Assembly: GCA_024704765.1 (NCBI GenBank)
Contig: JAKMXF010000233.1
Coordinates: 372,001 to 436,000, forward strand
Source: Oopsacas minuta
Taxonomy: Eukaryota; Animalia; Porifera
Direction: 5' to 3'
Length of the DNA stretch: 64,000 bases
Shown here: positions 9,501 to 57,400 of the stretch, piece after piece
Layout of the letters: each line of letters begins with the position of its first letter
How positions within the stretch are numbered: position 1 is the first letter of the stretch
Notes under the pieces: model-generated
What the model was told of the DNA's origin: nothing
Database searches by the model: none
The model's input: only the letters and a program-made list of their open reading frames with translations
Program-made: the position numbers and the translations under genes

Positions 9501-12500
9501 GGAGTTGAAATGCTCGCAAAAGGTGTTTCTTGTGTGGTCGTTGTTGACACTTTCCTTCAGTATTTGTTTACAAATTATTGATTGTCTGGCAGAGCCACCC
9601 TGTAGAATTTCTCATAAATATGATATACAGCTGAATCCGAAAATTCATTATCCAACTGTCGCCATTCTGTCGGCGCTTCGGTTTACGTAAAACGAGTGTC
9701 TACTGCAGTTGTCTTCATCTAATACGCTAAATTCCTCATTCATTGTTCAATAATTATAATTCATGAATTCTATATGCTTAGACATCCTATTGAGAATACT
9801 ATCAGAAACGGAGTACATACTGCGGACAGAAAGTCTAGCTCAGCTCTTGGTTTCAGATCTAGAAGTAACAGTGAGGTGAGGAATAACATATTAAACTATA
9901 AGTTTGTCTATTAGTGGAGATAGCAATTGTTCAGTGATTTGTGTAATGAATATTTTGCATCAAAACAGTAGTTCCCGAATTGTTAATGAGAAATCTCAGC
10001 ATAGTATAACACTGATAATAATGTGACTTATACAATATTCAAATTTCGAAATCTCATATTTCAAGGTTATACGTGTATTATACGACTTGTGTTTTTATTG
10101 AATTATCGCTTTATAGCCTAAAGATCCTCTTGAAGTAATATCTCCTCCTCCAACTACTCCTAACTGTAAGTATATTGAATATTACAGTCAGCTTCCGTTG
10201 TATCGAAGTATCCACTATATGAAGTTATCATCGTGGTCCCTTGAGCTTCAATATAACTGGAGTTGACAATATACGAAGATTTGGACTGATTATAAGAGAT
10301 AATAATCTCTAGCAATATTTTGAATTTTGTTTAAATGGTGTGAAAATATGATTAACCACCAAATAGCTTTGAAAATTCACTTTTGAAAAATTCAGTTACG
10401 AAATATATCCATGCACCAACATTCGTCTTAATCGACACATCGCGTCGTCCATGCCATGAGGACATCTCAAATAGTGTCTATTAATACGTAATAGGATGCT
10501 TTGATTATGTATTAACGTATTTTAGTAGCTAATGGACATAAAGATGAACCTGTTATGACGAAGTACCTCGTACCTATTGGAGAGAAAATAGAATTTGCAC
10601 CCAAGTTTCCACACAAAGTACGTTGTCTCCTCGCTCCGCCCCCCGCCGGGTATCGTGTCCTTATTGTATGATAATTTTTGGGACACGTGTGTATTACGTA
10701 ATGATTATTACTATTAAACTAGGCGTGTCATTACACTAAATAATGTGATTATTTTGTAATTTTAATACACATAATAAGCATTACGTAGGTGTCCTTATCA
10801 TGTCTATATTGCAGATTTATATAGCGTTATACTTTGATTATTTTCAATGAATATTAACAATAGAAATCTGGGATTTTTTGCAAAATAACTCTAATGATTA
10901 TATTGCAGCGTAACTCTATTGTGTTATGCTATTGTAATGAGAAACTTGTTTCAGCTACACATGGTGTCCATATAAGCATGCGGACGGACGGTGTTTCATT
11001 ATTATTATTTATGACGTTATCATAATACAAAGTGTCCAATTCATGGAATTCCAATGATTCTACTTGTAAATATGTTAATTAAGCGTGTTAAAGGAAGTCT
11101 GTGAAGATAAAATCACTACTATTCACCCGTTAGTTAGTAAATATATTGTGTAGTTGAATTTCATATTACAGGTAAACTTGATGCGGGCGGTGGAGCTGAA
11201 ACAAGTTTCCAACTATCAGTGGGCTTATATTAATCTCTTATTGTTATTTTTAGGGTGTTAGCAATGCTAATTCATTTCCAAACAATCCTAATAATACTGG
11301 AAACAAACAAAGAATCAGTGAATCATCTTATAGTAATAAAAGGTAAGAATTATTATAGGAAATAAATCGCATTTTAGAACAGCGATTCTGAACCTATTTC
11401 AGTCGTGGATAACAATATTAACACCTGTGGTTCATCTCCCATAGACTGCAATATATATTTCTTCCAATATATATATATTTTTTGTACACCTTTCATAGCA
11501 ATCGACCTCAACACAAGATATCTCTACAACATCCCTTACACGACTATACCAGAAACATGTCCGCAGACTCTTCAGTAAAGAATAAACGTTCCCTCGGCGG
11601 ACTAGCTGACCATGAAAATCTCAGATCCAAATCTATATCAAACTTAGATACTGTAGTAGTTAGTACTAGTCCAGACCCTATCTTGCCGGAAATGAGGGTG
11701 GGATCGGCTCCAACGAGTCCAAAGTCAAACACACCTCCCCCCACCTCACGCCCTCTCATGGTGTCTATACCTACCTTACATAAGAGAGATCCTATATTCT
11801 CATCGGGAGAGCCTTCTCCTACTATTTTGTTAAGGTAAAGAAGTTAGAGTAACTCCCATTATATCAAACACAGGATATATCGAAGTCTGAAGTTGTACAA
11901 ATATGGTCCCAAACCGTCGAAGTAACTTTCACGGTCCCTTAAGCTAGGATATAACAGGAGTTAACAGTATTCTTGTATAAAGAGATACTTCCCTAACCCT
12001 CCCTCGCTCCATGGATAATCCCAGAAATTTGGACACTTTGCTGTACATCAAATAGATTCGTCTATGACTATAGTTAACTATATTTTCGTATTTATAGGAA
12101 TCACAAGCCTTCAAACGCTGCTCGCTCCTCCACATGGGTAGTTAGGCCTAACATGGTTAAATTCGGAGAACTAATTGGTCAGGGCTCATACGGTACAGTA
12201 TATAAGGGAGAATACCATGGGACTGTCGCTATTAAAATGTTGACATGCTCAGATCCAGGCCCGGAACAGCTGGACGCTTTTAATGAGGAAATAGAGATGT
12301 TACGACAGACACGTCATGATAATATACTCTTATTCATGGGATATATTCCATATCCGTTTGCTATATTAACCTCATGGTGTGATGGAAATACTCTATATTT
12401 TCATCTGCATATTAGTGAAGAAGAAATACCACAGGTAAATATCTTTAACTTTCCTTTATGCCATTTTGTAACCATGGTATGAGTCAATTAACTCGGATAA

Positions 12501-14481
12501 GACCGACACCCGGTTTGTTGAGATTACATTATACTCTCGAAGTATATATCTTATCCAATTATTCGAGATCTACTGTACTTCTCTCAAATAGGACAAAATG
12601 AACCAAATCGTGCTGCAAACAGCTCAGGGCATGTCATACCTCCACACATCAAGGAAAATAATCCATCGTGACCTGAAATCACAGAATATATTCCTACTCT
12701 CAGATTACACGGTTAAGATTGGAGATTTTGGGCTAGCAACAATGAAATCACGTTGGTCAGGTCCCAAACAGTTTATTGAACCACAAGGCTCTCTGCTATG
12801 GATGGCACCCGAGGTTATGAGAGCTGGTACGGATGGATATAAGGATCCTTATTCATTCCGCTCTGATGTATACTCGTTTGGTATTGTTCTCTATGAGATT
12901 ATTACAGGTGATCTCCCCCCATTCAAAGATCAAAATATGTAAGTTGATGTGTAGTGTATTAATAATGACTTGTTATTATTTGTGTGTAACTTTGGGGGTT
13001 ATGTCTTTTCTGAACCCAGGGGGGCTTGATATTGACCCCCTATACCAATTTAACAAATCTCAGTGTACCCCTCTCATAGAATACAATACAAAAGTGATAG
13101 CTAGCAAATACACACGGTATTGCTAGCTATCACTGAAAATATTTAAAACATGCATCTATAATTTTCTATGTTTTTCTAACTTTAAGTGCCCTTCTTAATG
13201 CTCGCGATCTACACATGTTTACACAACTCGTGTATCTTGTGAGTATAAGAGCTCATAGCTATTAACTAACCATCTAATAATGTATTATTATTGTAATTGT
13301 AACCACTTTTTATGAGCTAATTAATGGCTCGATGAGATATAACTTTAAAATTCATTTTACTGTCTGCTATAGAAACTTTAGAAGAAATATTAATAAGCTT
13401 TGCTGTGAGATTTGATAAATTCACATAATTTGAATTTATTATTTGAGACACAAATTTCGAAGCTATTGAGTCATAAAATTAATGAATTCTTTGATTATTT
13501 GTGAAAAATCAGACGTCAAACTTTATGATTTTCTTGGAAAAAAGCATGCTTGTCTGTTCAGTAAATTCTTACAGGTTTCATGAAGAGATTTTAATGTAAG
13601 TCCTGCTGGGAAAGCATAACAGTTGTATACTATGAATAAGGGAGATTTCGAATAGTCTACCTTCATAGAGTTAATAATATACACTGTGTACCCCGTTTCC
13701 CTCTTTGTGGAGGTTCATTTGTATGTGATTAGGAATTCGCTCTATTTATATTTCACTCCACTTCCAGAAGTTCCTCGTTTGCATAGGCCTAATTTGTGGA
13801 AGTTACACTGTATACACTTTGCACAGGGCAGTGTTGCATTGGTCGTATGTACCTGATGGCTAGGACCAGGGGGTAATCCATGAATTTCTGGGCAAGCACT
13901 TTTTCTTCCAGGGACTCTCATGGAGTGGAGGTTATTTGGACGTTAACATATTGATCCTGTAAAATTTGAGTCTCACAGCCAAACACTTGTGTCCTTCATG
14001 GCTGCCGAGCTGGCACTTTAAGATGTCCCCTATCACCTAGATATTTGCCTGAATCTATGACCCCCAAAATTATTTTATATAACCCGAATCCATAACTATT
14101 TAATCTCGCCTCTTTTTGCATAGTATTATTTCCTCTACACATTCTAGGCATATTCTATTGTTCCAGATCGGATTAGGTATACTCAGACCAGAAATAACAT
14201 TTGTACGTAAAAACACTCCCAACTACCTTGTAGACCTCTGTGGCAAATGTATTTCTTTCGACAAAGACGAACGTCCTCTATTCTCAGATTTTTGTGAAAA
14301 ATTGGAAACTGAATTATTCTGTGAAGACACTCAATCCGATATTGACAGGTTCATAATACGGAAAATATCTAGGCGTGTGTCTGAGACGAATATTGCAGAT
14401 TTACTAGACAGCTGGCCAATCATTCTTGATCGAGGATTGGCGCGTGAGATACAAACATTACCACACCAAACACCTACTTAA
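3545..14481 (+). CDS. RAF: RAF serine/threonine kinase (RBD, C1, CR2, kinase domain), about 17 exons
   Basis: Phase-consistent exons: 3843-4049, 4119-4227, 6407-6519, 8344-8456, 8654-8708, 8837-8890, 9116-9186, 9248-9328, 9782-9875, 10117-10165, 10526-10617, 11254-11342, 11499-11834, 12098-12434, 12592-12938, 14148-14481. The first exon 3545-3604 is only a candidate. Motifs: RBD ([13 protein letters not shown]...LRNISVEDC), C1 (H..CLVC..CEKC..H..C..C), [41 protein letters not shown]. Confidence 0.95.
10941..11209. mobile_element. Young 269-bp TIR element, family F
   Basis: 16-bp TIR GAAACTTGTTTCAGCT at both ends. Near-identical copies in the opposite orientation at about 4271-4530 and 24566-24810, all intronic. 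Confidence 0.75.
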
Positions 14482-16021
14482 AGCGATCAGCTGTCCGAGC
14501 GATTTTTTATGATTCGAGTTTCGATATTCAAAATGTACTTTAAAAGCATTTTTTTATTTTAGCGAATACAGTTTACAAATCTCGAGAGTTTGTGTATGTG
14601 TGATTGTTTGTTGTTTGTTGTTGTTTGTATATTTGTTTGCTGTTGTTCTCCAGTTATTGTTTACTGGATATACATCCCGAACAGTGCACCAGTATTTGAC
14701 AATAATATGGATTGCTTATTATTAAACCCAATTAGCTGAATTGTAATTTTAGAATTATTATTTGTACTAAGGACCAGGGATGATGAGGGTTTATAGCAGT
14801 GGATTGTGAGCTTTTAACTTTCAATGATTTCGGTTTCATGCCACAAATGGCAATTTTGAAATTCGTGCAATAGTTTTATCTACGCAATGCAAAAGTGAAC
14901 CAAGGATATATGCAAATAGAATATCAATAATGCTGAGATACGATCTACGAATTCATCAAACAGTAGTCCTTACAGATGCCCTCTAATTCAATAGGAATGG
15001 ACAGCAACTAACACTGTTTGACGATAACTAATGATAGCTCATTAATTTGCTATGTCCAGTTCTAAAGTATACATTTTGGGATTAACATTATTCGGCAAAA
15101 GTTCCCATTATTGGCTGTTGAATCACTGAAAAATGGACCAAACTATAAATGGAAAACTTGCTTGTATTTTTAAGTTTTCGCAGATATGGCTAACTTCACA
15201 TTTTCCATAAATCATTTCATTTATCCCGTATTTTTCAGAAGTTTCTACGAAAATGGCGTCCAAATATTTCACAACTTCGGCTTCGTATTATTATTGAACT
15301 AAATTTGACTTTGAAAGCGAGACAGTCTTCTTTATACACACACATGGTACATCTGCTAACTGGCTAGGGATTTTTCTTTTGTTATTGCTATCTAATTATT
15401 AGCGGAGTTATACGGATTGTATGGAATATGGCTGTCTTTAAATAGTTTTGATTCAAGTTAATGCTTTCCTTGGATATTATATCTGATGAGTAATCGATAT
15501 TCTAGAAAATATACACAAAATACCATCAATAGTACACGAATAAATCAAAATACAGTACACACCGGTTAATCAGTAACACCTGTATTCCAGTTAGTCCGGT
15601 CAAAATTTCCCTGTATTGACTCTCGAAGTTGGTATGCTAAATGCAATACAACAAATTCTACTCCATTTTTTCTGTGCAGGAATTATAATTATTTGATATA
15701 CGTATTCAGCGATCCGCAAGCCTCGTACTTCTTATCTGAAGTACTTTTTCCATAGTTACGTATCTGTACTATAGTTATTTTAGTCCCCAAAACTCCACTA
15801 TCATAATATCAATTCTCACGAACTTGAAAACAATACATATCTTCCATCATAATACACTTTCAGTTTGACCTCACATACGTCACAATAGAAACCACTACAG
15901 CTAATCAAATCTTACCCTAGCATCCTAGGTAGTGGCCTGCGGTAGCTTTCCGTATAAATAGCGAAATTATACTAAAATAATTGTTAGTTGAATTTTGTAA
16001 ATATTTTTGAATTGTCTACAG

Positions 16022-19000
16022 ATGAAGGTGTTTATATATATTTTTGTTTATTTGTTGTTTTGCAGTTGTTTTTATACTTTGGATGTGTACATAGAACCTG
16101 AAGAAAGTGCAAAAGTATTAGGTATTTTGTTGTTGTTGTTGTTGTTGTTTTGTTTTGTTCTGTTTTTGTTGACATATTTATCATTTTTGTTTGTAGGTCC
16201 AATAGATGAGAACTTTTACATTATACAAGATGATATACCAAGTGTATTTCTTAAAAGTATCCAAGATGTTATCGGGTCACTTAGAGCTATTCCAGCATGT
16301 GTACATAAACTGACACTTAAATGGGTACACGATGGACCTCATATGGTGAGATGTTTGTTCATATGTCTATGAAGTACAGTAGTTATCGCTTATACAAACA
16401 CCGGTTATAAGATACCGGATATAAGCATCATCCTCTGGAAAAATGATTCTCATATATTCCTGTATACTTATACCGGTTATAAGAACATGTTTACTACTCC
16501 TGAGGGTGTTCTTATAAGCGATAACCACTGTCAAATCCATCCAAATATCAACAACTAATGTAAACACTAATTCTATTGAGAATACTATTACAATACATAC
16601 ACCCTAAGCAGTACAGCATTAGCCATATGCTACAGTAATATCTCTTGTATTCGGATGGAACTTACACCAAATGCGTTTTAGCAAATTTCCTAGAATGTTT
16701 GGTTTGTATAGCAGTTTAATCACATAGCACAAATACCGATGAATTGCTACAGGAATTGTCAGTTAATAAGCAAAGTCATTTGTTTCCGTATTGATCACAG
16801 AATCTAATAATTCAAATTACACGTACATTATCAGGACTCATATAACAAGATATATTGACACCTTTAATAATACAAATACCAAACGCTATACTCCTCTACT
16901 ATTCCAGTTAAAATCAACACCAAAGTATTACAAATCTGTCTGTGCTCAAACATTAGCCAAGTAGATTCTATTTTTCTAAGAATACTAATGTTTGCATTTA
17001 TGTAAGAGTATAGCTTATGACCAGATATGTATCCAAATAATTAATTAGCCGCAAGAGTTATACTTCTAACAATTCTAAGCAAATTCTAGGAAATATTTCA
17101 TGCTTTCATTATACGTGGAGGGTGCATTATACTCTCTTTAATCTGAATAAGATAATTACGAACTACAGCTAATACGTGGAGTTAAAAATAATGGGACTTA
17201 AATTGGACCTGGTTTGGAGGGACAGGTATGTCTACAAATTCGAGAGTTTTGGCAAGTTTGCCTTCTATTCTTGTTCAGTTAATTATGTTATATATTAGGG
17301 ACGAATCAAGTCGTATTTTCTCTTCTAATTTTGGCTTGACATTCTCAAGTATTGATACCAGAAACTCATTACAGAATACCTCTCTGATAAGCTTTGATTA
17401 CGCCGTTGTTAACATAATGGCTTATAGGATGGAATCACAAATCCAAATATTCTCAAACTCATTTTGTATAGGAAATATTTCAGTTTCGATTGGCATAACT
17501 TCGGTAGAAACTTCTCTATGATTTATCCGCCATGATTAATAAGTTTATTTGGATTCACAAATGCCGCCAACTGTAACCTTATACAACTTCATAGATCGTG
17601 AGCCTTTTAGGAAGTTACTAAAAATAGATTTACTCATTCTATTTATGCTATAATTGGACTGAATCCCCTGGAAGGTGTTCATATGTTCTTATAAATTGGC
17701 TAATTTAACACTATCTCTATTTATAGCTACGATATGATATCAGAAGAATAATATCACTCAATGACAATAAACTGACAGTTACTACAAATATAGAATCTCA
17801 AGGATTTGTGCCAAGAGAGAAATCAGGTATGTGTACTCTCAGGGTGAATATGATAATCAGCAAATTCTGCTTATAAATCATATCAATGATAATTATTACA
17901 CACACACTAGCCTGTGCCTGATTGTACAAAGTATATGAATGTACACGTTAGGGCTATTGCACCTGTAACTAACACTATGATAACATTGTAATTATATTAG
18001 ATGATGGCACTTGGCAAAATATATATGAGTTAACGGGGGATATGACAGATAATTCGAATAAGTTTAGTCAGCTAGTGTATATGCCAAAAACTGTCCGCGA
18101 TGAAATTGACCGATATCGATTTTGCCCTTCATTAGAAGTACTTTTGTAATATCAGGAATTATAATTAGAAAGAAGATTGTCTTAAAACGCACCTTTGACA
18201 GTCTACTTTATTAAATTTGTTTATTTATTTCACTTTACAGATTTAACATTGAATTTCAATTGTATCGACACTACCTCGCAACAAACATACACAGAATACT
18301 TCTACATTGAGATATACTTACTATCAGATGTTAGTCAGCTGATATATGGATCCCCTGTTGCTATGTGGATACAGAAAAAATGTGGTTCATGTGATTCTAC
18401 TTATCTTAACTATATTCCTGACTTGAGTATACTTGGTGAGTTGACAGCAATCAATTTCATTGTTTGGACGTGGTTTATAAATTGGAACAAGTTTCGGTTT
18501 CTGTCCCGAACGCGAACTCAATTGTCTTACCAACCCTTTTCCAAACCCAGGATTTTCAATATTTCCTGAATTTCGCATTATCTCCCCTTATTCCCCCCGA
18601 AAATATCCAGAAATATACCAAAAATGGTTGAAATTCGGGAAATTTACCAGCGAGGTACTACGTAGTTGGCGAATATGTTACAAGCACCTTCCAGTTAATG
18701 ATTTCGGTCTTTTAATGAGATTTAAGTGCTCAGAAATCTTATAAATATACAGAAACATTCCTGGAGAGATTCTCAATAATTTCTATTCAACTTTTGTAGA
18801 TAATAATTATGTATTCTTTGCTCACATATTCGTTAATGATAGCGTATCATTGTCATAACCAGTGAGGTCAATTGTCCGTCTACTTGACTACCGAACTGAG
18901 TTATTGTAAAGCTGCCAGGAAAATATGTAAGGACAGGTTTCAACTAATATATCTGTCTCTTTTCCGGGAATCGATTGTCATGAAACTATTAAATTTTCGT

Positions 19001-20843
19001 TGGAATGTTAGATTCACTTTAACTAATACAAAATCAAAATTCTATATTAATTAATATACAAGAATAGATAAGAACCGTCTTCCAGAGGATGGTGCTTATA
19101 ACCGGCATCTACTGTATGATATATGAATGTGTTCACAGCGGATACCGACAATTCGCACCACGACAATTCGCACCTAATTTGATTGGCCTACTGTATCCAC
19201 TTGCCCAGCCTCAACAGATGCTCCTGGACTTTGAGAAGGGCCCGATTACCAGCTTTGAGCATGTCTGGCCTAACACAGTAGTGAAGTGCTGCTTCTTCCA
19301 CCTCACACAGAATATCTGGCGACATGTGCAGACTGCAGCCCTACAGACTGCACATGTCGCCAGATATTCTGTGTGAGGTGGAAGAAGCAGCACTTCACTA
19401 CTGTGTTAGGCCAGACATGCTCAAAGCTGGTAATCGGGCCCTTCTCAAAGTCCAGGAGCATCTGTTGAGGCTGGGCAAGTGGATACAGTAGGCCAATCAA
19501 ATTAGGTGCGAATTGTCGTGGTGCGAATTGTCGGTATCCCGTTCACAGGTATAGCAAGGAGTCCTGATAGATGCGGTGGCTGTGAGAATGAAGGAAGATG
19601 CGCTAGGCTCCCTGGAGGATACAGCAAGTGTAAATGTAAGAAAGGATACACTGGAGTAAGGTGTGAACTACGTAAGTGTTAATTAATTGACATATGAATA
19701 ATTGTTGTTATTATTGTTTGTATTTTGTAGCTAGATGTAAACCTGATTGTGTAAACGGAGGAACATGTATTGGTCCCCAGAAATGCTCATGTCCTCCTCT
19801 ATTCAGAGGTCCAATGTGTGAATATCGTAAGTTCATATAAATAATTGAGTACAATCACTTCAGTTATATTTAACACGGATATATAGAAACACCCGCTTCT
19901 ATCGAAGTGTGAATTGTACAAATATGGTCCCAACATATCTTGAGCTTCGATATAGCGGGAATTGACTGTAATTCTATTTACTAATATATTCTAATCTTAT
20001 AGCGGTTTGTAATCCTATTTGTAAGAATGGTGGTTATTGTAATTCTACGAATGTGTGTAGTTGTCCTCCTGGATTTAGTGGATCAGCTTGTGGCATAGGT
20101 AAGTGACTATTTGTATCAGAGGTTCCCAACCGCTGCATACATTATATTGACGTCATCATGTTTATGTTTTCAGCTCCAACTGTTGTGATTACATCTGGAC
20201 CAGTTGATACTACAGTATACTCTATGCAAGCGGTTAAGCTGCAATGTAGAGCTAAAGGAAAGCCTAGACCTAAGTTCAGATGGTTGGATACTGAAGAGAG
20301 ACCAATTCTACCTGATGGAAAGAGATATAGACATTTAAAGGTTAGAAGATATAAACAAATAAACAAACAAACAAATGACATACACGCAAAGAAATATTCA
20401 AATAGACAAACAAACAACACAAACAAACTAATATCCAGTTAGACTATTATACATTAAACCTTTACATTCAGGTAGTTGTAGTAAAGTCTCAGGGCTACTC
20501 AGACTTATGGATATACGGAGCTGATGAATCAGATCAAGGAACATACCATTGTATAGCTGAAAATGAATACAGTATGGATAGAGCTTCTGCTACACTAACT
20601 GTTATTCCTTATACAGGTATATAGACAACTCCTGTTATATCTAACACGGATATATCGAATACCCCCCGCTTATACCGAAGTCTGAAATTGTATACAAAAT
20701 GGTCCCAAACCGTCAAAGTAATGATCACGGCCCTTGTCTGTGTATTTATTGTTGTTTTTGTTTATTTAGGAGGTGACGGTGATCTGGAGGATATATTTAC
20801 AGGTTCAGGTTCAGGTTCCGGAGACTACTGGCCTAACTCATAA
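16022..20843 (+). CDS. Secreted WIF1-like protein: signal peptide, WIF domain, 3 EGF repeats, Ig (I-set) domain, acidic Ser-Gly tail
   Basis: Exons 16022-16121, 16197-16345, 17727-17826, 18241-about 18384, 19549-19671, 19731-19826, 20003-20098, 20174-20340, 20472-20616, 20770-20843. Signal peptide [22 protein letters not shown]-like segments [46 protein letters not shown]...QKKC carry the WIF disulfide pair. Three 6-Cys EGF units. The Ig domain has LQC..W..DQGTYHC. Confidence 0.8.
17170..17530 (-). pseudogene. Possible decayed Tc1/mariner transposase C-terminal fragment in the WIF-like gene intron 2
   Basis: One minus-strand frame, broken by three stops, reads [10 protein letters not shown]...[22 protein letters not shown]. 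This loosely resembles the Tc1 PDLNPIENLW...IREEW...LVESMPRRL region. Confidence 0.3.
19139..19540. mobile_element. 402-bp fold-back (palindromic) Mutator/MULE-derived element with 8-bp TSD
   Basis: The arms are reverse complements about 19339/19340, with only a few mismatches seen near the centre and at the terminal base. TSD GTTCACAG at 19131-19138 and 19541-19548. The ends carry tandem GACAATTCGCACC subrepeats. Each arm encodes [37 protein letters not shown], which matches the MULE transposase DFE...CxFH...W motif. Confidence 0.85.
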
Positions 20844-21328
20844 ACACCAAATACACATACACAATACAATCCCTATAGAATCATATTTTCTTGGAGATCC
20901 CTATTCACTTCTTCTATTTCTGAATTAAGTATATTTGTAATTGAATAATATTCCAATTTGTTTGCTTTGTATAATCTTAGAACACCCTTGGGAATAGCAA
21001 TACATGTTCTTAGAAATATATGAGAACAGTTTTCCAGAGGATGGTGCTTATAACCGGCATCCGCTGTATATTGAATTAGCTATATGGGGCTGTACCCAAT
21101 CCAGGGGTGTCTCCTCCCAAGACTGATATACTCCTACTTTAGTGAGGCCGATCCGTCCCAAAACGCGGACCCAATGACCCAATCCCACTCTTATGTATTC
21201 CCGTTAACAATCAATAAACACGATTATAATTAATACAATTCCACAAGCATTCCCAGTACACAATAATATTGAATTGACCGACCTTTTGACTATATTACAC
21301 GTCCAATAACTACTAATTACAATTACTG

Positions 21329-22327
21329 TCAACAAGCATTCCATTTGTTAAACTCTAGCACTCCTAATGGATCGAGAATTTGTTGCATTTCTTTATTACA
21401 TCTGCTAATATACATTGAGAGATGAGGAAGAACTTTTTCATTCACTAATTTGTATTTTCTAATAATCTGCACGGCCTGTTTGACCGCCAGCTGGGATTTG
21501 CTATTGTCTGCCCAGATCATGCATAACTGTAGCCATTTTCGTTTCCACTTCATGGACATTTCGCTGCGTTTGCATCTACTGGACGTTTTCTCTTCGGATT
21601 CCGCCCTTGTCATAACATTTTTCATCCAACCCTCCAACATATCGACAGGAAACATGCTTGCTCTGAAATGCTTCGAGCTGTGGTAACCCCAAACGAATTC
21701 GGGTATAAGAGCGATCTTCAATTCGTCACACATTAGATAATCCGCTAGCCAGCTAAAATGGAAATAATTTTCCGAGTTTATCATTTCGTTTCGTATCACC
21801 CCCGTGTAGAAAAAATACAACGCAGTTTCAAAGGTGTCAGGATATATCAACGCGATTGAAATGACTTCCTGTTTCGATTCTGTGTATTCATTTTTGTTGA
21901 ACATTGTCTCAAAATATTGACTGTGTTTTGTGAGATATCTCTTGTGACAGTAGAATGTCCTGTCCAATCCGTGAAGTTTTATTTGAATGTCGTGACCAAG
22001 GGGGTTATTGACAAGCGACGCTGCTCCGAGCCCTTCAATACACGTTAACTGAGTTAATTTTTGTAGCAAGCTAGTACTGTAAAAAAGTTTCAACGAATTT
22101 CCTTCAATAGAAATTGAGATTACATCATTTTGCTCGTTCGCTATTTCTTGTTCGCTGAGATTTGGAGCTAAAATAACTTGAATATTTGAGTCTTTTGAAA
22201 GTTCTGCTATCTTCGATTGTAAGTTGAGGATCGATTTTACGATCGAAGATAGTTTGGTTTGCTGTAAGTCCATTGTTGCAGATTTGAGATTATCGTAAAA
22301 TTTCCCTTTTATTCGTTGCCTTTGCAT
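21329..22327 (-). CDS. BTB/POZ-domain protein, intronless, 332 aa
   Basis: Single ORF containing DIQIKL...FYCHKRYL..HSQYFETMF...ESKQEVISI....DTFETALYFFYTG...LADYLMCDEL. Confidence 0.85.
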   Translation of the reverse strand: MQRQRIKGKFYDNLKSATMDLQQTKLSSIVKSILNLQSKIAELSKDSNIQVILAPNLSEQEIANEQNDVISISIEGNSLKLFYSTSLLQKLTQLTCIEGLGAASLVNNPLGHDIQIKLHGLDRTFYCHKRYLTKHSQYFETMFNKNEYTESKQEVISIALIYPDTFETALYFFYTGVIRNEMINSENYFHFSWLADYLMCDELKIALIPEFVWGYHSSKHFRASMFPVDMLEGWMKNVMTRAESEEKTSSRCKRSEMSMKWKRKWLQLCMIWADNSKSQLAVKQAVQIIRKYKLVNEKVLPHLSMYISRCNKEMQQILDPLGVLEFNKWNAC

Positions 22328-32978: not shown

Positions 32979-35900
32979 ATGGAGCCAGACACAAGTCCAC
33001 ACAATAACAGCAATAAAGACCTTACGTCACAAGAAGCAAAACTACTTGGAACATTTGACACGAATATTATACTCAGAAAAACAGTTTTCCTTCTCACAGA
33101 CAAACGGAAAGTGAATGAAAAGTTAATATTTATAACAAAGAATAGACTATTTGTTCGTTCACATAAAACTCCAACAAAACTGGATATGAGTGTAAATTTA
33201 CTAAGAATTAGAAGTATAACCTGTAAAGACCCGAAACACGTTACTGTTGGTGTTGAAAAAATGTTTGGATCACCCGTTGGAAGCAAAGCGGATGTTGTAG
33301 TGACGAATTTAGATTTTATTGTGGAGACAGTGGACCAGGAGGAATTGGTTGTTGCTTTGTTGACACCTTTAAAGCCACTTGGAATGTGGCATGACAGAAT
33401 TCAACTCACGATTGAACAGAAAGAAAGTAGTATAAAGGTTAGTGATAAATATGTTGTTAAGATAGTTATCCAGTGTAATCAGGGCTGTTTAGGGTACACA
33501 ATCCGCTCATGAATGTATTCAGTGTAACTTTCACGAACGAGGTCCCAGGGACGCCGAACAGGCTGACCGGTTTCTGCCAATTCCCCGATTATGGCGGTTC
33601 ATATGTATCGGAATTTAAATTCGACATTGGTTGTTTTTTTCGTTGCGGTCCCAATTTGTGGAGGTTACACTATATTTAGAAAGTTGATAGAGTGTAGTGT
33701 TAATCTAATAATCCACAGAATATTTAAGGAGTTAGATAAGTTGTAATGTTTATCGTGCTCTCAGTGATGAGAGAATGCTTGTAGCTTGTTATGCCCCTTC
33801 ACACTATCTACTGTTACGATAGAGCATAAATCATCTACTGCTATTCCTGCTACACTAATGAACTCTTCTCTCCCGAATTGAGTTATAATATTTCCTTCAT
33901 TAGAGAATATCTTTACTTTACAAGAGTCTGGATCAAATACGATTATGTTTAGTTGTTGATCTAAACAGAAATAAGAACTACAACCCAGCATATCTTTATG
34001 TATAATCCATCTAGTCATCATGCCTTGCTTAGAGAATGCTTGTATAGGATATTCTGTCTTATTAAGGAGAATATAGAATTCATGTCTAGCTAGTGAGATA
34101 TTATTTATCTCAGTATCCTGTTGTTTGAATTGAGTGTTTAGAGGTATTTCCTTCTCTTCCTTCAATTCAAGAGTTAGGACTAGTAATGTCATTTTGCTAT
34201 ATTCACCAACAAATACATTAGTATTGTCTGTACAAATTCCTGATAGCGAATAATCGGAAAATTTGGAAGATTCTATCTTTAAGGTAGATCTGTTGAATTT
34301 AACTATTATTCGATGACATTGTACAAACACAGAGTTGTATAAGATGAGGATATTCTCAAGATTAATCATTCGTTTATCTTTAATAGATTTAATCCAATCT
34401 CCATTACCAGAGAATACCTGTACTCTGTTTGCTCTATAATCAGTTACATAAACTCTATCATTCATCGAGTCAATAGCAATACCGCATGGACAGTCCAGCT
34501 GATTATCTAGCTTGCCTTCGTCACCACAACTCCACTTGAGTGGAATAGGAATGTGTTCTTCAAAGTTGACAAATTTCTGTTCACAATAACACAGACTATG
34601 TATACTCTCCCTCAACTCGTCTACTTTCCAGTTTAGCTTCAAGAAAGGAATATCGATATTCATTTCTCTTTTTACTGTCTCGATTGCTTCAGGTATTTGA
34701 TCGATAAATCCTGGTAGAGTTGGGGATAAGTCTTTGAAGAGTTTTTCCATTTCTGTTTTCTGTTTGTTAATTGCCTCGATTTTTTTGTTAACTTCGTCTT
34801 TTCGCTTGTTCAACCGTTGATTCGTTTCATCCCAGACAGCCTCCAGTTCCCCGATAATCAGCTGAGCCTTCTCTTCTATCAGCTGTTTCATTTCATCACT
34901 AACCTTCCTCACCAGTGATTTCTTGCTGTCTATAACTTCTCTCAAAATATTCATTCTGTCCTGTAGCTTGTTACTGACAGGTATCAAGCTAACAGGTCCC
35001 ATTACTACATTCTTATCCAATCGTGCTGTTGCCATGTTTTAGCTAGTAAATTAGACATTAAAAATCTAATGTTGTTATTGTTTGTTTGTTTGTTGGTTTG
35101 TTGTCGAATTGATTAAAGAACTGGTACGAGCTATAGATATATGAAATTACTGTGAAAGGTGACAAATACCTTAACTTAACAGATTCTAGTGGTTAATTCA
35201 GTATAATAAAGCTCATTATTTAAAGTTAAGAATTGATTTTGAACTGTCCGCACATATTATTGAGTTAATAATGATAATATTACTAATATATTTTCAATAT
35301 ACTGGAATGAAGCTTGTATTTGGCATTTCGTCGCGTTTTGGTGAGTGTTACGCGAGACAGACCACTCAATATGTCTAAAACACGATGCATTCCGCCAAAG
35401 TTTGGGCAGTTGTCGTAGAATTTATGACAAAGGAAACATCGACATGTGTATTCCTAATCCAGAATTCATATTCACTACCCTTCGTTGTTCTTTTAGTACT
35501 TATCGCGAACTCAGCTTATAAGTATGATATTATTCTCCAAATAGATACATCGTTCGCTCTCTGAGAGTGCTGATCTCTTGTCAACACCCCCCAACCCACC
35601 ATGTGACGGATTCAATTTGGTATACCCCATGCTCTGTGACCTATACGAGGTTCCTGTACACGAGGAAGTACTATGGGACATTGAAAATGCGTATTTCTCC
35701 CGTGGCAGAAAAATGTTATCTCTCTCAGAATTTTCACATTTGCCTTGTAAAGATCTACTTCCTATTTTGGCTGCTCTGGAGTATAATGAGTATTTTATTG
35801 GTCTCAGTCTAGTTGATACTAAACTGAGTAATGAAGGAGTAGAGGTGAGTTTATGATAATACTGGTGATATTTAACGCTATATACAATAAATGTTGGTTA

Positions 35901-38900
35901 TAAGAACACCCTTAGGAGTAGCAATACATATTCTTACAACCGGCATAAATGTACAGGAACATGTGAGAACCGTTTTCCAGAGGATGCTGCTTATAATCGG
36001 CATCCACTGTATATAAGGCTTCGATACGTACTACAATACAGCAGTTCACGACCTGGGTCCACGGACGAGAGCAGGGTGTTCACAGGATCTCAAATTTTGT
36101 ATTGCAGTCTATAGGAGGGGGTCCACCGGTCCATGGTCTAGTGATGAGAAAGGTTGGGGAACACTACTCTATTGTATCAACTATCGAATTAGCGTATTAG
36201 AATTGTTATATTACAAAAACTTACCTTTCAATTCAATCAAAATATATTCAAATCAAATCAGTGTAATTGAATGCAATAATGTATTAGTAGAATTAGAATA
36301 CTATACAAACACACATAAGCAGGGTCATTTATAGTGAATTCCATGTGACTACTATTGTAACTATGTACATAGTGTGTGTCAAGTTACATATACTGGGATA
36401 TATTTAGCACATGTAGATTAATACTCCTGTCATATCGAAGCTCAAGGGGCTGTGATAATTACTTCGATATCACCGATGAAAGATATGTTTCCTTGAAGGT
36501 TTGGGACAATATTTGTACAATCTTTAGACTTCCTTATAAGCGGAAGTTAACTGTATCTTTCATCGGTAATATCGAAGCAATTATCACAGTCCCTTGAGCT
36601 TCGATATAACTGGAATTTACTATAACACTCTCGATAGGTTCTCCAAAAGGTATTACGTCATAACAGTACTCTCACACAACTTACACTAAAGAACATTGGC
36701 CTTAAACCTGAATCAGTTCACAAGCTAATGACACGATCTCTATCCGTTAATAAACGTTCAAGCATAACTCATATCGATCTTAGTGACAACCCGCTTGAAG
36801 ACAAAGGAGTCATTGATGTAGCAAATGCTCTTGAAAAACTATCTAACTTAACAAATGTGATTCTTAAACGGTGTCTAATGACAAGTAAAGGAAGTTTCAT
36901 ACTCACCAATTCTTTGCTGAAGAATACGAATGTTAGAAGCTCACTGGTCGAGCTGTCAATTGGAGAAAACCCGCTATATCAAGGGAACAGTTTGCATGGA
37001 TTTTTGAAGTATCTAGCTTCACCGAATAGTTTAACAAAGCTAGATTTGACTGTATGCGGCATACCGTTAGAATTCTTATGTAACGCTCTGGCTCAGAGCT
37101 CGCTACACACCCTTGAAGAATTATATTTCGCCTGTAACATCAAACTCCCTCAAGGCCACAGATCACATAGTATTAGCTCTCCATATTACAAACACTTTTT
37201 CAGTTCAACTCGTGCGTTAAGGCATATTGATATGTCGAATTGTAAACTACATCCAGACACTATTATTTTGATTCTTGAAGGCTTGAGGGAGAATATCTCA
37301 GGTGTGAAATTGGTCCTAGATTTAAGTAGCAACCTTTTGACACCTCGTATTCAGGAAATCGCGAACTTAATCGGTCAAATTACAGTATTATTTAGTCTAC
37401 GTATGTATAACGTGGGACTTAATGAGCATTATGAGGAAGCGATTACGAAAATGAGTTCAAACTCAAATTTGAAACATTTATATTTGGGAAAGAACTTTCG
37501 GAAAGGTAAATGGTCTGCTGGTGAGGCGTTACAGTTATTCGTTATTAACTCAGAGTTAGAAACTTTATCGCTAAGTGAGTGTAAGCTGAAGGAAGCTATT
37601 CATTTCCTTATTCGATCACTCAAGCAGAATCATACTTTGAAAGTAAGTTTTTTAGAGAATCAGGAATTCTCAAACTCTCATGGGTTATGCCACATTATAG
37701 AATTATGTATCATGAACACACCCAAGGCATCTTGTTGGTTCAGGTTTGGTCAAAATGGACATAGAAGATCAACTAACCATATAATGACGTAAACATCTCT
37801 GTGGCCAAGTTTTGTCATATGAACTAACTTTTCGCCAATTTTTTCTGGGGGAAAATTGGACATGTGACCTTTAATTAGTGTTCCTGGAATTTTGTAGTGA
37901 AACTCCAGAAGTGGGCAATCTCTTAGGAGCGGGCGTAAGACATCAATTATCATGCAAATCTGAGGTGAAACTAGAAGAGCGAGGACGAAATGATAAATAT
38001 TTGGCTCTTTAAAATACCGATTACAAGTTCCACTATATATTGTGTAGGTATTGGACATAACAGGTAATCTAATGGGAGATGGTGGAGCAAGACTGTTAGC
38101 TAAAGTGCTACACATGAACAGTACACTACAAGTATTGAACTATGATCAGAATAATCTCAGTCCTAGCGGATTAGGATATATCTGTAGTGCTCTAACTTCT
38201 AATCATAGTCTCAGAGATATGTCATTTCCGATTCAAGATTTATTCCAGATTAAGTAAGTATTATATGTTTTGTTTTTTCAGGGACTTTTTGTCCATTTAC
38301 TCAAAATTGCAAACATGTAGGTCAGAGTGCCCTCGTCCCGAAAAAAAATCTCTCGGGACAATTCATCCTACCATTAATACAGTCTACTCCTGCTATTTCG
38401 AGCACGGATATATAGAAATACCCGCTTATATCAGAGTCTTAAATGTACAAATATGACCCTAAACCGTCAAATTTACATATATTTCCTGGGTCATATTGAA
38501 GTAATTATCACGGTCCCTTTGAGCAACGATATAACGGAGTTGAACTGTATTTAATACTTCTAGACGTGAGTATGAGAAAGACAAGTACGCCCTGAATAGA
38601 GCAGAACATTATCTACAGAAAATAGAGGAAAGTGTAAAGAGAAATCACTCACAGAGCAAACACTCATTAGAACTGAAATCTCATCAAAACAAATTAGCAG
38701 TTAAACTTGTGTCGATTCGGCATGTTGTTGAACAAACAGCTGGAAAGTTGAAAGGAGTTATAGATAAAACTGAGAGGAGTAGAGAGACACGTCCTGACGT
38801 CAGAGAAGCGAATAATATCCTGGTATGTCTATGTACAGTGGAAACTCGTTAATACGAACAAAAATATACACATAAGCAGGTGTCTACAGTGTTTATTCAA

Positions 38901-44601: not shown

Positions 44602-45164
44602 TGGCTAGGTATTTGCCTCTTTGTGAAATAATTATATGAATTTATGCAAATGGAGTACAGATCGGGACTCGGATATTCGGGATGTCCGCTTAAACGGGAC
44701 AATGGTTTGGGAACAGATTTTTTACATAGAAAAATCGTCGGATATTTGGAACATCGAATCGGTACAGAGATGTCAAAAGGTGTGAAAATATACACATTAA
44801 CTTTTTTTCAAATGTCAGCTGCACAACTAGATGTAACTAAGAGTATACATGCCAAATTTGGTGTCTTAATCTCTAAAGGTGTGAACAGCAAAGCGAAAAC
44901 AAAAATCAAAAATTTAGAATACCATATCCCCCTGGTTAAGCGCTGGAGTATTCTCCCAGTTTTTCAGTGTAATATCGCATCAAATTTGTCCCAAGCTATA
45001 ATTCTAATTAAATAATTATTCATAAAGTTCCTAGTTTAATATTACATAATGAAACCAGAACTATAATTATAACATTAGAGACAAAATGTGGCTCTTACGG
45101 ACAATATGCATAAGATATTTAGAAATATAAGAAAGCTGTAAATTGATTGGATATTAGAAAAAAT

Positions 45165-46451
45165 ATGGCAACAGCACGATTGGATAAGAATGTAGTAATG
45201 GGACCTGTTAGCTTGATGCCTGTCAGTAACAAGCTACAGGACAGAATGAATATTTTGAGAGAAGTTATAGACAGCAAGAAATCACTGGTGAGGAAGGTTA
45301 GTGATGAAATGAAACAGCTGATAGAAGAGAAGGCTCAGCTGATTATCGGGGAACTGGAGGCTGTCTGGGATGAAACGAATCAACGGTTGAACAAGCGAAA
45401 AGACGAAGTTAACAAAAAAATCGACGCAATTAACAAACAGAAAACAGAAATGGAAAAACTCTTCAAAGACTTATCCCCAACTCTACCAGGATTTATCGAT
45501 CAAATACCTGAAGCAATCGAGACAGTAAAAAGAGAAATGAATATCGATATTCCTTTCTTGAAGCTAAACTGGAAAGTAGACGAGTTGAGGGAGAGTATAC
45601 ATAGTCTGTGTTATTGTGAACAGAAATTTGTCAACTTTGAAGAACACATTCCTATTCCACTCAAGTGGAGTTGTTGTGACCAAGGCATGCGAGATAATCA
45701 GCTGAACTGTCCATGCGGTATAGCTATTGACTCTATGAATGATAGAGTTTATGTAGCTGATAATAGTGCAAACAGAGTACAGGTATTCTCTGGTAATGGA
45801 GATTGGATTAAATCTATTAAAGATGAACGAATGATTAAGCCTGAGAATATCCTCATCTTATACAACTCTGTGTTTGTACAATGTCAACAAATAATAGTGA
45901 AATTCAACAGATCTACCTTAAAGATAGAATCTTCCAAATTTTCCGATTATTTCCTATCAGGAATTTGTACAGACAATACTAATGTATTTGTTGGTGAGTA
46001 TAGCGAAATGAAATTAGTAGTCCTAACTCTTGAATTGAAGGAAGAGAAGAAAATACCTCTAAACACTCAATTCAAACAACAGGATACTCGGATAAAAGAC
46101 ATCTCACTAGCTAGACATGAATTCTATATTCTCCTTGATGAGACAGAATATTCTATACAAGCATTCTCTAAGCAAGGCATGATGACTAGATGGATTATAC
46201 ATGAATATATGCCGGATTGGAGTTCTTATTTCTGTTTAGATCAACAACTAAACATAATCGTATCTGATAGAGACTCTTGTAAAGTAAAGATATTCTCTAA
46301 TGAAGGAAATATTATAACTCAATTCGGGAGAGAAGGATCAGATAAAGAAGAGTTCATTAGTGTAGCAGGAATAGCAGTAGATGATTTATGCTCTATCGTA
46401 ACAGTAGATTGGAAGTGCTATAACATCATACAAACATTCTCTCATCACTGA
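45165..46451 (+). CDS. Coiled-coil plus NHL beta-propeller protein, copy B (inverted paralogue of 33761-35035), 428 aa
   Basis: Intronless. The ATG at 45165 aligns with the start of copy A. The N-terminus is near-identical to copy A and the propeller is divergent. Confidence 0.88.
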   Translation: MATARLDKNVVMGPVSLMPVSNKLQDRMNILREVIDSKKSLVRKVSDEMKQLIEEKAQLIIGELEAVWDETNQRLNKRKDEVNKKIDAINKQKTEMEKLFKDLSPTLPGFIDQIPEAIETVKREMNIDIPFLKLNWKVDELRESIHSLCYCEQKFVNFEEHIPIPLKWSCCDQGMRDNQLNCPCGIAIDSMNDRVYVADNSANRVQVFSGNGDWIKSIKDERMIKPENILILYNSVFVQCQQIIVKFNRSTLKIESSKFSDYFLSGICTDNTNVFVGEYSEMKLVVLTLELKEEKKIPLNTQFKQQDTRIKDISLARHEFYILLDETEYSIQAFSKQGMMTRWIIHEYMPDWSSYFCLDQQLNIIVSDRDSCKVKIFSNEGNIITQFGREGSDKEEFISVAGIAVDDLCSIVTVDWKCYNIIQTFSHH

Positions 46452-54400: not shown

Positions 54401-57400
54401 GCAGGTGAAATAGGATTTTACTCTGGCATGTGTGAGGGATTACTCGCCAACAGAGCTCAGTTAGAAGATAGATATACTGACAAAGCATGGAGTAAGGTTA
54501 TTAAACTGTTGGACAGTATCGTACAATTCGAAATTAGAGTTAAAGAAGATGGGATTGAGTTAGAAGATAGTGTTATACAGATTAGAAATGAGTTTAAGAT
54601 TATTGTTTCAAAGTTTAAGCTACCGATAAACTTCAAGAAATCTGAATTAAATGAATTATAAGTGTGAATTACACATATTCTGGTTTAGTTTTTTCAATTT
54701 ATATATTTGTGATTACAGACAATTCCTGCTATATCGAAGCTCAAAGGGGCCGCGATAATTACTTCGGTTCAATAACTGAATGGGTTCATTGGATTACCCA
54801 GAATTACTTACTTTAACTTCAAGAGTAGTTCTCAGCATATTATCTTGATTGAGAGAATACTTAGCTTCACCTGTGATAGCATCAATGGGTCCTTTATTAA
54901 TCTGTATCTTAATGGCTGAGTATAGATTGTACAGTTCTTCTCCAGGAAGTCCTCTTAAGTAATTATACATACACACGGCTAGCCAATGACTGAGGAGCTT
55001 CTCACATATTGATGTGCTAAAAATTATTACTGATATTATATCCATATATGGAGTTGTATTTTTGAATTTTAGAAGGTTGAAAATAGACAGGACTTGATAA
55101 CTAAGTATTTCCCAAACGATCTAATACCATTATTGATGGTTTAGCCCTGGGGGTATAGCTGTATAAGCCTATAGTTTGCAGAGGGAACATTTTATTTCAC
55201 ATACGAAGCAAACTATAAGAAGTATAATATCACCTCCACATACGGAGTGCGATGGACGCTTAAAAATATTATCCTGTCTCCCTGTTTGTGGAGTTTCATT
55301 TGTGTGGGGCTAGGAATTCGCTCTATTTATTTTCACTCCGTTTCCAAAAGTTACCCAGTTCCATAGGTTTTATTGTATTCATAATGTTTGTTTACCTTCT
55401 AAATAGAGTCTTAACATTCCGATTAGAAGTATACACACTTGTTGAGATGAGATCATCTATTAGTAGTTTAAGAATCTCAGTTGCATAGAAGAGATTCTTG
55501 TGTAATGCTATCATTAGTAGAGAAGCAAAATACGATCTATAAGAGGAGAGGGGAAACTATAAACTATAGCATCGAAGCTCAGCGAAAAGTGATAAGGCTT
55601 TCGATATGACCGATAAAGTATATGTTACTTTGACGGTTTGGGACCATATCTGTGTAATTTCAGGCTTCGATATATCCGTGCTTGATATAACAGGAGCCGA
55701 CTGAATTTCTAACATATACGAAGTATAACTTTAGAAAATGGTGGTGTTCGCTGATATACAATATTCGTCATTAGCAAATTTTCAGGGAAGTAGAGTTCAT
55801 TTTATATTGAAAATAATTCCTATAATAGCAAGTTCGCGAATTAGCCTAAGGAAATTCGCGAACTTCACTGATTACAATTCAATGGGGAAAGGAGAGTTAG
55901 CTGTTTGTATGTAAAATCAATTTACTTTTCGCCGGTGTCAATATATGAATTCTGGTCAAATATTCTAATTAGCTCAATCAAGAATTCTTTGTTATTGAAA
56001 AGTTCTTGAAATATCTTCATAGCTTTTCTGAACATTTCTATTTTGTTATTAACCTCAAAAGGATCCTAAAATGTACAAGTAGATAATTTTCAGGAAATTA
56101 TTTGCTATATTCTGGGATTCACGAAAATTCCAAGTTTTACATCCAAAAATAGCAATTTTAGGCTATTATTTGGGGAAAAAGTCACAGATATTCGCGAATA
56201 TTTCCTGGATTTCTTGTAATATCCATAATCCAGAGATCTCGGGAGCCTCTTAACATCCACTTACTGTCGGGGGAAGAGAGAGAAAATCTATAGATTCGTT
56301 TTTAGAGAATAACAGTTTGGTAACATATGTTTGGAAATCTGTAAATGGTATTGTATTTGTATCAGCTGCTTTCACGAAGTCAACTATCTCTACTTGTAGC
56401 TCAGCGAAACCTAAAAATACATACATTCAGATCCAATCCATGGTCCAGTAATACAATAGCGATCACACATGCAAAACTGCAACGTAAGAGTTCAGATTTG
56501 TATAAATAGTAAAAATATTAATGTAGGCCAATTGTATTTGTAAAATTTGAAACAGTTATAAGAACAGCGGATATAAGCACTTTCCTCTGGAAAAAGGTTC
56601 TTATTCATTTCTGTATATTTAGCATGTATTCCTAGTCCCAAGGGTGTTATTATAATAAGTGGGACACCCGCCAAAATGCGAAAATATGAGTCAAGTTAAT
56701 CATACGGAATTCCTAATTAACCGTGTTTGTATTTTAACGAAGTTAAGCTATACATATATTTCTGAATTAGGTAAATAGAATGGCTCTAATGAGAGACAAT
56801 TGTGATAGCAAGTTAGAAATACTTCGATGGATAGAAATACAGAAAAATATACTCTCTCAAGATGTCCAGTTTATGCGTGACGTAATCACAGCCCGGTCAG
56901 ATGAAATCACACAAGAACTCAACCAATGTTTTATCGATTACGAACAAGAATGCGAACGTTTGGACGCAATGGTTAAACTGAAGAATTTTACTTTGGAGGG
57001 ACAAAATTTGGGGAATGATTATTATCAAGAAAATATGTTCGAAACTCAATCGAAGATTGAAGAATTGAAAGGCAAACTTTCCCTGGACACTTCATTTGCG
57101 AAAAATCAACACCTTAGCTTTGATCGGGTGAAGTTTGAAAATATGTTAAAAGAAAATATGTACATAAAAACACCATTAGAAAAAAAATACAAAAATAAAC
57201 ACGATATTATTTGGGAAAAAAGCAAGAAAGGTTCTTTGAGAACCCAGCTAAGTTCCCCAAGCTCGATCGATATTGACAAAACAAACAATTTTGTTTACAT
57301 TACAGACACAAACAACTCTCGAATACAAATATTTACGGAGGCTGGAGATCACTACTCAACTCTCCTTTTACCAGATACTTTCTACCCATTAAGAATGAAG

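Follow-up and report, generated by a model that had tools for sequence, protein, structure and literature searches.

A conserved gene for a predicted secreted WIF-EGF-Ig protein in the glass sponge Oopsacas minuta, a species in which Wnt is reported absent

WIF1-type proteins are usually described as regulators of Wnt or Hedgehog, and Shifted, the WIF1 orthologue of Drosophila, stabilises and spreads lipid-modified Hedgehog. Vertebrate WIF1 (PDB 2D3J, 2YGN-2YGQ) is a secreted protein in which an N-terminal WIF domain is followed by EGF-like repeats and a basic or hydrophilic tail. The WIF domain of WIF1 has an alkyl-binding site, and the protein binds both Wnt and Shh; Shifted is a case of a WIF1-type protein with a main ligand other than Wnt (PMC8699845). 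The mouse Wif1 gene comprises ten exons, with EGF exons of 96 bp, and the origin of Wif1 has been placed in the bilaterian ancestor by one study (PMC7565927). A second group of WIF-domain proteins, the receptor tyrosine kinases RYK, Derailed and LIN-18, carry the domain on the extracellular side. A protein of the glass sponge Oopsacas minuta combining a WIF domain with three EGF repeats has already been mentioned in print (Kerekes et al.). It is almost certainly the product of the gene analyzed here, being from the same species and having a WIF domain followed by three EGF repeats.

The gene lies in a 64-kb stretch of JAKMXF010000233.1 (hereafter, the window). This record belongs to the O. minuta WGS project JAKMXF000000000, so the glass-sponge host that the initial annotation had considered as a possibility is the correct one. 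The extent given in that annotation, 16022-20843 (+), runs exactly from the ATG to the stop codon of a 10-exon model (Table 1), whose spliced frame of 414 aa is free of stops. All introns are of the GT-AG type and each has a pyrimidine tract. The ATG is immediately preceded by an AG, possibly the end of an intron in the 5' UTR or a site of trans-splicing. RNA evidence came from RNA-like contigs of one public run (X4), in which seven of the nine GT..AG joints (introns 2, 3, 4, 5, 6, 7 and 9) were found at the exact predicted bases, with a contig depth of ~1000-2800 in exons versus ~100 in introns. Introns 1 and 8 are absent among the joints listed from this run because the low-complexity repeats at both were skipped; their boundaries are identical in the orthologues, which support both. 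Thus, the proposed splicing was confirmed in RNA at seven joints and is backed by the orthologues at the other two.

Table 1. Exons of the O. minuta WIF-EGF-Ig gene (positions in the window)
Feature	Position	Strand	Content and evidence
Exon 1	16022..16121	+	Start codon, predicted signal peptide (~residues 1-19) and first residues of the predicted WIF domain; conserved in orthologues
Exon 2	16197..16345	+	Predicted N-terminal part of WIF, ending in an AIPxCV..L.L.W motif; joint to exon 3 in RNA contigs; 149 nt in all orthologues
Exon 3	17727..17826	+	Predicted central WIF strands; entirely within the PF02019-matching peptide; both junctions in RNA contigs
Exon 4	18241..18435	+	Predicted C-terminal part of WIF (F-N-C ... 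K-K-C-G-x-C) and conserved ~20-aa linker; start lies within the WIF match
Exon 5	19549..19671	+	EGF-like domain 1; Pfam EGF E 2.7e-4; both junctions in RNA contigs
Exon 6	19731..19826	+	EGF-like domain 2; 96-nt phase-1 exon; Pfam EGF_2 E 2.7e-5; junctions in RNA contigs
Exon 7	20003..20098	+	EGF-like domain 3; 96-nt phase-1 exon; N-x-T site; Pfam EGF_2 E 1.2e-6; junction to Ig exon in RNA contigs
Exon 8	20174..20340	+	I-set Ig domain, first half; Pfam I-set profile 3-43, E 2.2e-5; Ig_3 E 4.5e-6
Exon 9	20472..20616	+	I-set Ig domain, second half; Pfam I-set profile 49-90, E 1.7e-8; junction to exon 10 in RNA contigs
Exon 10	20770..20843	+	Acidic tail with Ser-Gly repeat (resembling glycosaminoglycan attachment sites), stop codon

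GenBank annotates this gene with a 439-aa product, and the surplus 25 aa (75 nt) correspond in length to intron 1. Across the orthologue set, this intron measures 75, 399, 53, 111, 112 and 343 nt and is therefore not kept in frame. We rejected the GenBank model in view of the lengths of 53, 112 and 343 nt in relatives; it is probably the result of erroneous retention of intron 1. The WIF-EGF-Ig gene is followed by a BTB gene on the opposite strand (21329-22327). A neighbouring ORF of 332 aa has an annotated product of 314 aa, the start being placed differently. No paralogue of the WIF-EGF-Ig gene was detected within the window.

The WIF-EGF-Ig gene of O. minuta is real, expressed, conserved and spliced as modelled. 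Orthologues found by synteny are complete in four further assemblies and partial (exons 3-9) in a fifth; the four further complete genomes hold five intact copies of 413-415 aa, in which the 10 exons and their phases are unchanged. These orthologues share exon lengths, every cysteine of the mature protein, the acidic SGSG tail and the same layout of three EGF repeats followed by an I-set Ig domain, and 24 columns of exon 4 are invariant across six orthologues. In unsaturated pairs, the NG86 dN/dS is ~0.07-0.13 for the WIF, EGF and Ig parts, and strong purifying selection acts on every domain.

The N-terminal module, which is split over four exons, is to judge from its sequence a WIF domain. 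A 65-aa peptide spanning two RNA-confirmed junctions matched PF02019 (WIF) with an E-value of 8.3e-7 and 29.3 bits, above the gathering cut-off of 25, and no other Pfam family was matched even at E 10. The match covers profile positions 36-97 of 131 with no net indel, and hence concerns 62 of the 131 positions, in the central part of the profile. When this core peptide was searched against 177,635 PDB sequences, the best four matches were all human WIF1; the identity is low (14 bits in phmmer), with the AIP..H...W, G.VP and F.C motifs aligned. The precomputed Pfam matches on the GenBank product likewise comprise WIF (weak), EGF and I-set. In the WIF superfamily, a disulfide within the domain joins the Cys that follows F-x to one close to the domain end. 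The first WIF cysteine (F-N-C, residue 124) aligns with that of F-P-C in WIF1. The cysteine 40 residues further on (K-K-C, residue 164), a candidate for its partner, is unchanged in every orthologue, and no tool aligned it to WIF1.

Exons 1-4 taken singly had no Pfam match, WIF included, and the open frame formed by exon 1, intron 1 and exon 2 had no WIF match in Pfam. Exons 2 and 4 retrieved only chance matches from PDB with phmmer, and profiles built from their orthologue alignments did not match WIF in PDB or Pfam. For exon 4, a search of 1.84 billion representatives returned four translated-repeat junk proteins and no relatives, its recognition in the ESM Atlas was far below threshold, and the exon-4 alignment had no match in a scan of JGI metagenomes. 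Neither the N-terminal nor the C-terminal third of WIF gave a match, whether as pieces or as orthologue profiles. The initial annotation had described a complete WIF module including the disulfide pair, and this is shown in part: alignment with WIF1 covers the core and the first of the two cysteines, and the outer thirds went undetected when searched as pieces.

Pfam searches with exon pieces assigned exons 5, 6 and 7 to three EGF repeats (EGF/EGF_2) and exons 8 and 9 to the two halves of one I-set domain, as had been proposed. A hydropathy scan, which is not a dedicated signal-peptide predictor, found one strongly hydrophobic segment only, at the N-terminus (KD19 maximum of 1.9 at residues 3-21). 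There is no second hydrophobic segment and therefore no membrane anchor, in agreement with the secreted layout suggested earlier. The tail core F..SGSGD[YF] is present in 5/5 complete orthologues, and is followed by W in 4/5. From its resemblance to known motifs, this Ser-Gly tail may be a site of sugar-chain (glycosaminoglycan) attachment.

In comparison with described systems, the O. minuta protein is closest to WIF1, with which it shares a predicted secreted nature, the N-terminal WIF domain, the following EGF repeats (of the C-x-x-x-C-x-N-G-G-x-C type in both) and a hydrophilic tail. Each of the two genes is made up of ten exons: exons 1-4 encode the signal peptide and WIF, and every EGF repeat has an exon to itself (WIF1: PMC7565927). 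Two of the three EGF exons in O. minuta have the 96-bp size of those in mouse Wif1. However, instead of the WIF domain plus five EGF repeats that define WIF1 and Shifted, three EGF repeats and an I-set Ig domain were found, the latter occupying the place of EGF IV-V in WIF1. Furthermore, unlike WIF1, the protein has a conserved ~20-aa linker between WIF and EGF1, its tail is acidic and rich in Ser-Gly, and its host is reported to be without Wnt. Shifted has the same secreted WIF and EGF architecture, but with five EGF repeats and without an Ig domain. In RYK proteins the WIF ectodomain is linked with a transmembrane helix and with a tyrosine-kinase-like domain, whereas the O. minuta gene reaches its stop codon directly after the tail; no kinase exon was found in the gene or before the next gene (BTB). 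The initial annotation had regarded this domain combination as unrecognised. With the WIF and three EGF repeats already in print and the gene in GenBank, this holds only in part: in the portion of the text of Kerekes et al. available to us, the Ig domain, the Ser-Gly tail, the glass-sponge orthologues and the link to Wnt loss are not mentioned. The texts consulted also contain nothing on the Ig domain, the tail, how well the gene is conserved, or its conflict with the loss of Wnt.

The genome paper of O. minuta reports wnt, wntless and dishevelled as absent (PMC10280926). The same loss of wnt, wls and dvl has been reported for glass sponges in general (PMC10280926, PMC5684314, PMC10282587, PMC5797367), as the initial annotation had stated for Wnt ligands. 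On the other hand, glass sponges retain FzdB, LRP, beta-catenin, axin, GSK3 and TCF, and O. minuta also has porcupine (PMC5684314). The absence of Wnt is taken here from these published surveys. Porcupine is the Wnt acyltransferase. Since no wnt, wntless or dishevelled is reported in this species and sponges are not known to have a true Hedgehog, the ligand of the protein most likely differs from both classical ones. The protein hence points to a use of WIF that is independent of Wnt and possibly ancestral.

Accordingly, the reading that we prefer, and hold with moderate confidence, is that the gene encodes a secreted relative of WIF1/Shifted whose WIF module is in Wnt-independent, possibly ancestral use. 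In order along the chain, the predicted protein has a signal peptide, a single WIF domain, a short linker that is conserved, three EGF repeats on their own phase-1 exons, an I-set Ig domain and, last, the acidic Ser-Gly tail. If WIF1 and Shifted are a guide, a hydrophobic or lipid-bearing extracellular ligand would sit in the alkyl pocket of the WIF domain. The EGF and Ig domains, together with a tail that may be glycanated, would retain the resulting complex at cell surfaces or within the extracellular matrix, and the protein would then sequester or carry its ligand. The idea of an orphan lipid or morphogen carrier, put forward in the initial annotation, is treated here as a hypothesis.

Other explanations were weighed against this one. 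It is possible, if rather doubtful, that the protein belongs to the matrix or adhesion machinery, its WIF domain having become structural or protein-binding without any lipid or morphogen ligand, and its EGF repeats, Ig domain and proteoglycan-like tail serving the tissue architecture of a syncytial sponge. The combination of EGF repeats, an I-set domain and an acidic Ser-Gly tail is common among matrix and adhesion proteins, the classical ligands of WIF have been reported as missing (PMC10280926), and the outer thirds of WIF have diverged too far for recognition as pieces. However, the dN/dS values given above show WIF to be as constrained as the other parts, and its core motifs still align with WIF1. 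In addition, WIF domains are not known to serve in a purely structural role. A more conventional possibility, which we consider improbable, is that glass sponges keep a very divergent lipidated ligand and that the protein is an ordinary antagonist or carrier of this Wnt-like (or Hedgehog-like) molecule. The retained FzdB, LRP, beta-catenin, axin, GSK3 and TCF, together with porcupine in O. minuta, are in its favor (PMC5684314), and a conserved WIF1-like protein would be one more retained extracellular part. Nevertheless, wnt has been searched for in two genomes and several transcriptomes and was not found, and wntless and dishevelled are missing as well (PMC10280926, PMC10282587, PMC5797367, PMC5684314).

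It was also considered whether there is no WIF protein here at all, either because the resemblance of the N-terminal domain is due to chance or because two genes were wrongly fused. The failure of exons 1-4, singly, to match anything in Pfam or PDB would fit this explanation, as would the exclusively junk repeat proteins retrieved by exon 4. Against it, the core peptide exceeds the curated Pfam threshold for WIF with no competing family, its top PDB matches are all WIF1, and the 10 exons stay in frame in the four other complete genomes. A two-gene fusion artefact was rejected, as RNA contigs join the WIF exons to the EGF exons and the EGF exons to the Ig exons, and the exon plan is conserved. 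This explanation is highly improbable, and we regard it as close to refuted.

A further and speculative reading, to which we give rather low probability, is that an extracellular system for lipid ligands still works in glass sponges after their loss of Wnt, Wntless and Dishevelled. In that case, the conserved, proteoglycan-like WIF-EGF-Ig protein would be the carrier or buffer for a lipidated ligand, perhaps together with the retained porcupine, FzdB and LRP, and the task that the WIF module first had would not have been specific to Wnt.

The value of this gene is lessened by the fact that its WIF and three EGF repeats have already been noticed in print and that GenBank has an annotation for it. 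The present analysis contributes a corrected gene model and describes the Ig domain and the Ser-Gly tail, which is conserved; it also provides the orthologues, an analysis of selection and an explicit connection with the loss of Wnt. In O. minuta, a WIF1-like protein is expressed and correctly spliced, and strong purifying selection acts on it in this species and five related assemblies, whereas published surveys find no Wnt ligand in glass sponges. It therefore offers a clonable handle on the question of what the WIF module bound before, or without, Wnt, as well as on whether another ligand serves the FzdB, LRP and porcupine that glass sponges retain.

The stretch 15500-21500 of the window was inspected and spliced by hand, giving a WIF1-like gene of ten exons whose introns all have GT-AG borders and a pyrimidine tract. 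The joined frame of 1245 nt (414 aa) is free of stop codons and runs from ATG to stop exactly at the positions of the initial annotation, 16022-20843. An AG lies directly 5' of the start ATG (…tctacag/ATG, window 16007-16021), a possible splice acceptor for either an intron in the 5' UTR or a trans-spliced leader; such a leader has been reported in the glass sponge A. vastus (PMC10282587).

Exons of the WIF1-like gene and other coding features in the window
Feature	Position	Strand	Source
Exon 1	16022-16121	+	Hand splicing
Exon 2	16197-16345	+	Hand splicing
Exon 3	17727-17826	+	Hand splicing
Exon 4	18241-18435	+	Hand splicing
Exon 5	19549-19671	+	Hand splicing
Exon 6	19731-19826	+	Hand splicing
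Exon 7	20003-20098	+	Hand splicing
Exon 8	20174-20340	+	Hand splicing
Exon 9	20472-20616	+	Hand splicing
Exon 10	20770-20843	+	Hand splicing
Large single-exon ORF with NHL repeats	33761-35035		
Large single-exon ORF with NHL repeats	45147-46451		
Large single-exon ORF with NHL repeats	56780-58738		
LRR ORF	36728-37792		
Class-C GPCR ORF	59248-60990		

Four public runs from a single sample cover the stretch, three of which are DNA-like. In the contigs of the fourth (X4), which are RNA-like, exon depth is ~1000-2800 versus ~100 for introns, and GT..AG joints occur at 16345/17727, 17826/18241, 18435/19549, 19671/19731, 19826/20003, 20098/20174 and 20616/20770. These are introns 2, 3, 4, 5, 6, 7 and 9 of the model, so that seven of its nine junctions are found at the predicted bases and the gene is transcribed. 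Introns 1 and 8, which contain low-complexity repeats skipped in the joint listing, are not among the joints listed.

The GenBank product of this gene (L001, the window's own locus, 11431-16252) has 439 aa and carries precomputed Pfam matches to WIF (weak), EGF_2, hEGF, EGF_TEN, I-set, Ig_2 and Ig_3. Its surplus 25 aa correspond to the 75-nt intron 1, which is open in frame by chance (ORF 16007-16372) and whose retention (window 16022-16345) would put a hydrophobic stretch within the WIF domain. Because its length varies among orthologues (399, 53, 111, 112 and 343 nt), intron 1 is a real intron; since 53, 112 and 343 are not divisible by three, GenBank's 439-aa model is probably incorrect.

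Several introns contain repeats. A 400-nt foldback element in intron 4 (19131-19548), with arms at 19140-19338 and 19341-19539 that are 99% complementary, is bounded by the 8-bp direct repeat GTTCACAG, whose downstream copy is the source of the AG acceptor used for exon 5 in the X4 joint. Its copy number is very high in the DNA runs (depth to ~200,000). Short intronic stretches at 16344-16504, 19886-20046 and 20530-20690 reach word depths of thousands in every run and are linked to one another by many joints; they resemble a family of small interspersed repeats.

When in-frame exon pieces were searched against Pfam, exons 5, 6 and 7 matched EGF/EGF_2, and exons 8 and 9 each matched half of a single I-set Ig domain (profile positions 3-43 and 49-90). 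As pieces, exons 1-4 had no Pfam match and exons 2 and 4 no PDB match; exon 4 had no useful match in the ESM Atlas and returned only translated-repeat junk from 1.84 billion representatives. A 65-aa peptide spanning the RNA-confirmed junctions 2/3 and 3/4 (residues 62-126) matched Pfam WIF (PF02019) at E 8.3e-7 and 29.3 bits, above the gathering score of 25, without net insertion or deletion across positions 36-97 of the 131-position profile, and no other Pfam family up to E 10. Its best four matches among 177,635 PDB sequences were all human WIF1 (2D3J, 2YGN, 2YGO and 2YGP; E ~0.3, not significant alone), with the motifs A-I-P-x-x-[VI]-H, W, G-x-V-P and F-x-C aligned. Extrapolated, the 131-position profile would end near an invariant K-K-C (residue 164), which argues for a domain of the right size. 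The only hydrophobic segment is N-terminal, a secreted layout. The domain order first read by eye, WIF followed by three EGF repeats and one I-set Ig domain, is borne out by Pfam, for WIF in its core.

A homologue search with the adjacent BTB ORF returned the 314-aa product of the window itself and five relatives. Starting from the BTB genes of these relatives, syntenic loci were located in five other assemblies, one set coming from metagenomes labelled BUSC20-1. Orthologue exons, recovered by tblastn and splice-site refinement, are the same ten in the same phases, with lengths of 97-103, 149, 100, 195, 123, 96, 96, 167-170, 145 and 68-74 nt. Frames are intact at L002, L004, L008, L009 and L010 (413-415 aa), and the stretch examined for L007 contains exons 3-9. 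The orthologues are 69-72% identical to the window protein; all mature-protein cysteines are invariant, and the two signal-peptide cysteines are not. Nei-Gojobori dN/dS for unsaturated pairs (WIF, 0.07-0.13; EGF, 0.06-0.08; Ig, 0.09-0.12) shows that the protein is constrained. The tail core F..SGSGD[YF] is also invariant, followed by W in all except L010; with its flanking acidic residues, F-S-G-S-G-D resembles glycosaminoglycan attachment sites, which is taken as a lead only. The O-fucose consensus C2-x4-[ST]-C3 (EGF2/EGF3, window 19731-20098) falls in EGF2 in O. minuta and L004 and in EGF3 in L002, L008 and L010, so that one such site is kept at a position that shifts between repeats. Gene order around the gene is rearranged: it lies tail to tail with BTB in O. 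minuta, L002, L008 and L010, downstream on the same strand in the BUSC20-1 contigs (L003/L004), and upstream in L007.

The guess of a glass sponge was right, as JAKMXF010000233.1 (GCA_024704765.1), the record carrying the 314-aa BTB product, belongs to the Oopsacas minuta genome project, JAKMXF000000000 (PMC10280926). O. minuta is without wnt, wntless, dishevelled and fzdA (PMC10280926; PMC5684314), and A. vastus is without Wnts (PMC10282587; PMC5797367). Glass sponges retain apc, axin, beta-catenin, fzdB, gsk3, LRP and tcf, and O. minuta also porcupine (PMC5684314). True Hedgehog is not known from sponges. If the protein works like WIF1 and Shifted (PMC8699845), its WIF pocket may hold a lipid or lipidated ligand, and the EGF repeats, Ig domain and tail may anchor this complex in the matrix or at the cell surface. 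A rival reading would have a hidden divergent Wnt-like ligand; another would give the protein a purely structural role in the matrix.

WIF is unmentioned in the main texts of PMC10280926, PMC5684314, PMC10282587 and PMC5797367 and in the available supplement files of the O. minuta paper. According to Pennarubia et al. 2020, WIF with five EGF repeats occurs in no sponge or diploblast, Wif1 dates to the bilaterian ancestor, and mouse Wif1 has ten exons, with EGF exons of 96 bp (PMC7565927). The combination was not recognised in the initial annotation; the WIF1-like nature of the protein is already in print (Kerekes et al.), and the accessible text does not mention the Ig domain, the tail or a tie to Wnt loss. 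The gene is real, its support is good, and its product is partly published; its interest is that of a conserved WIF1-like protein within a Wnt-less clade.
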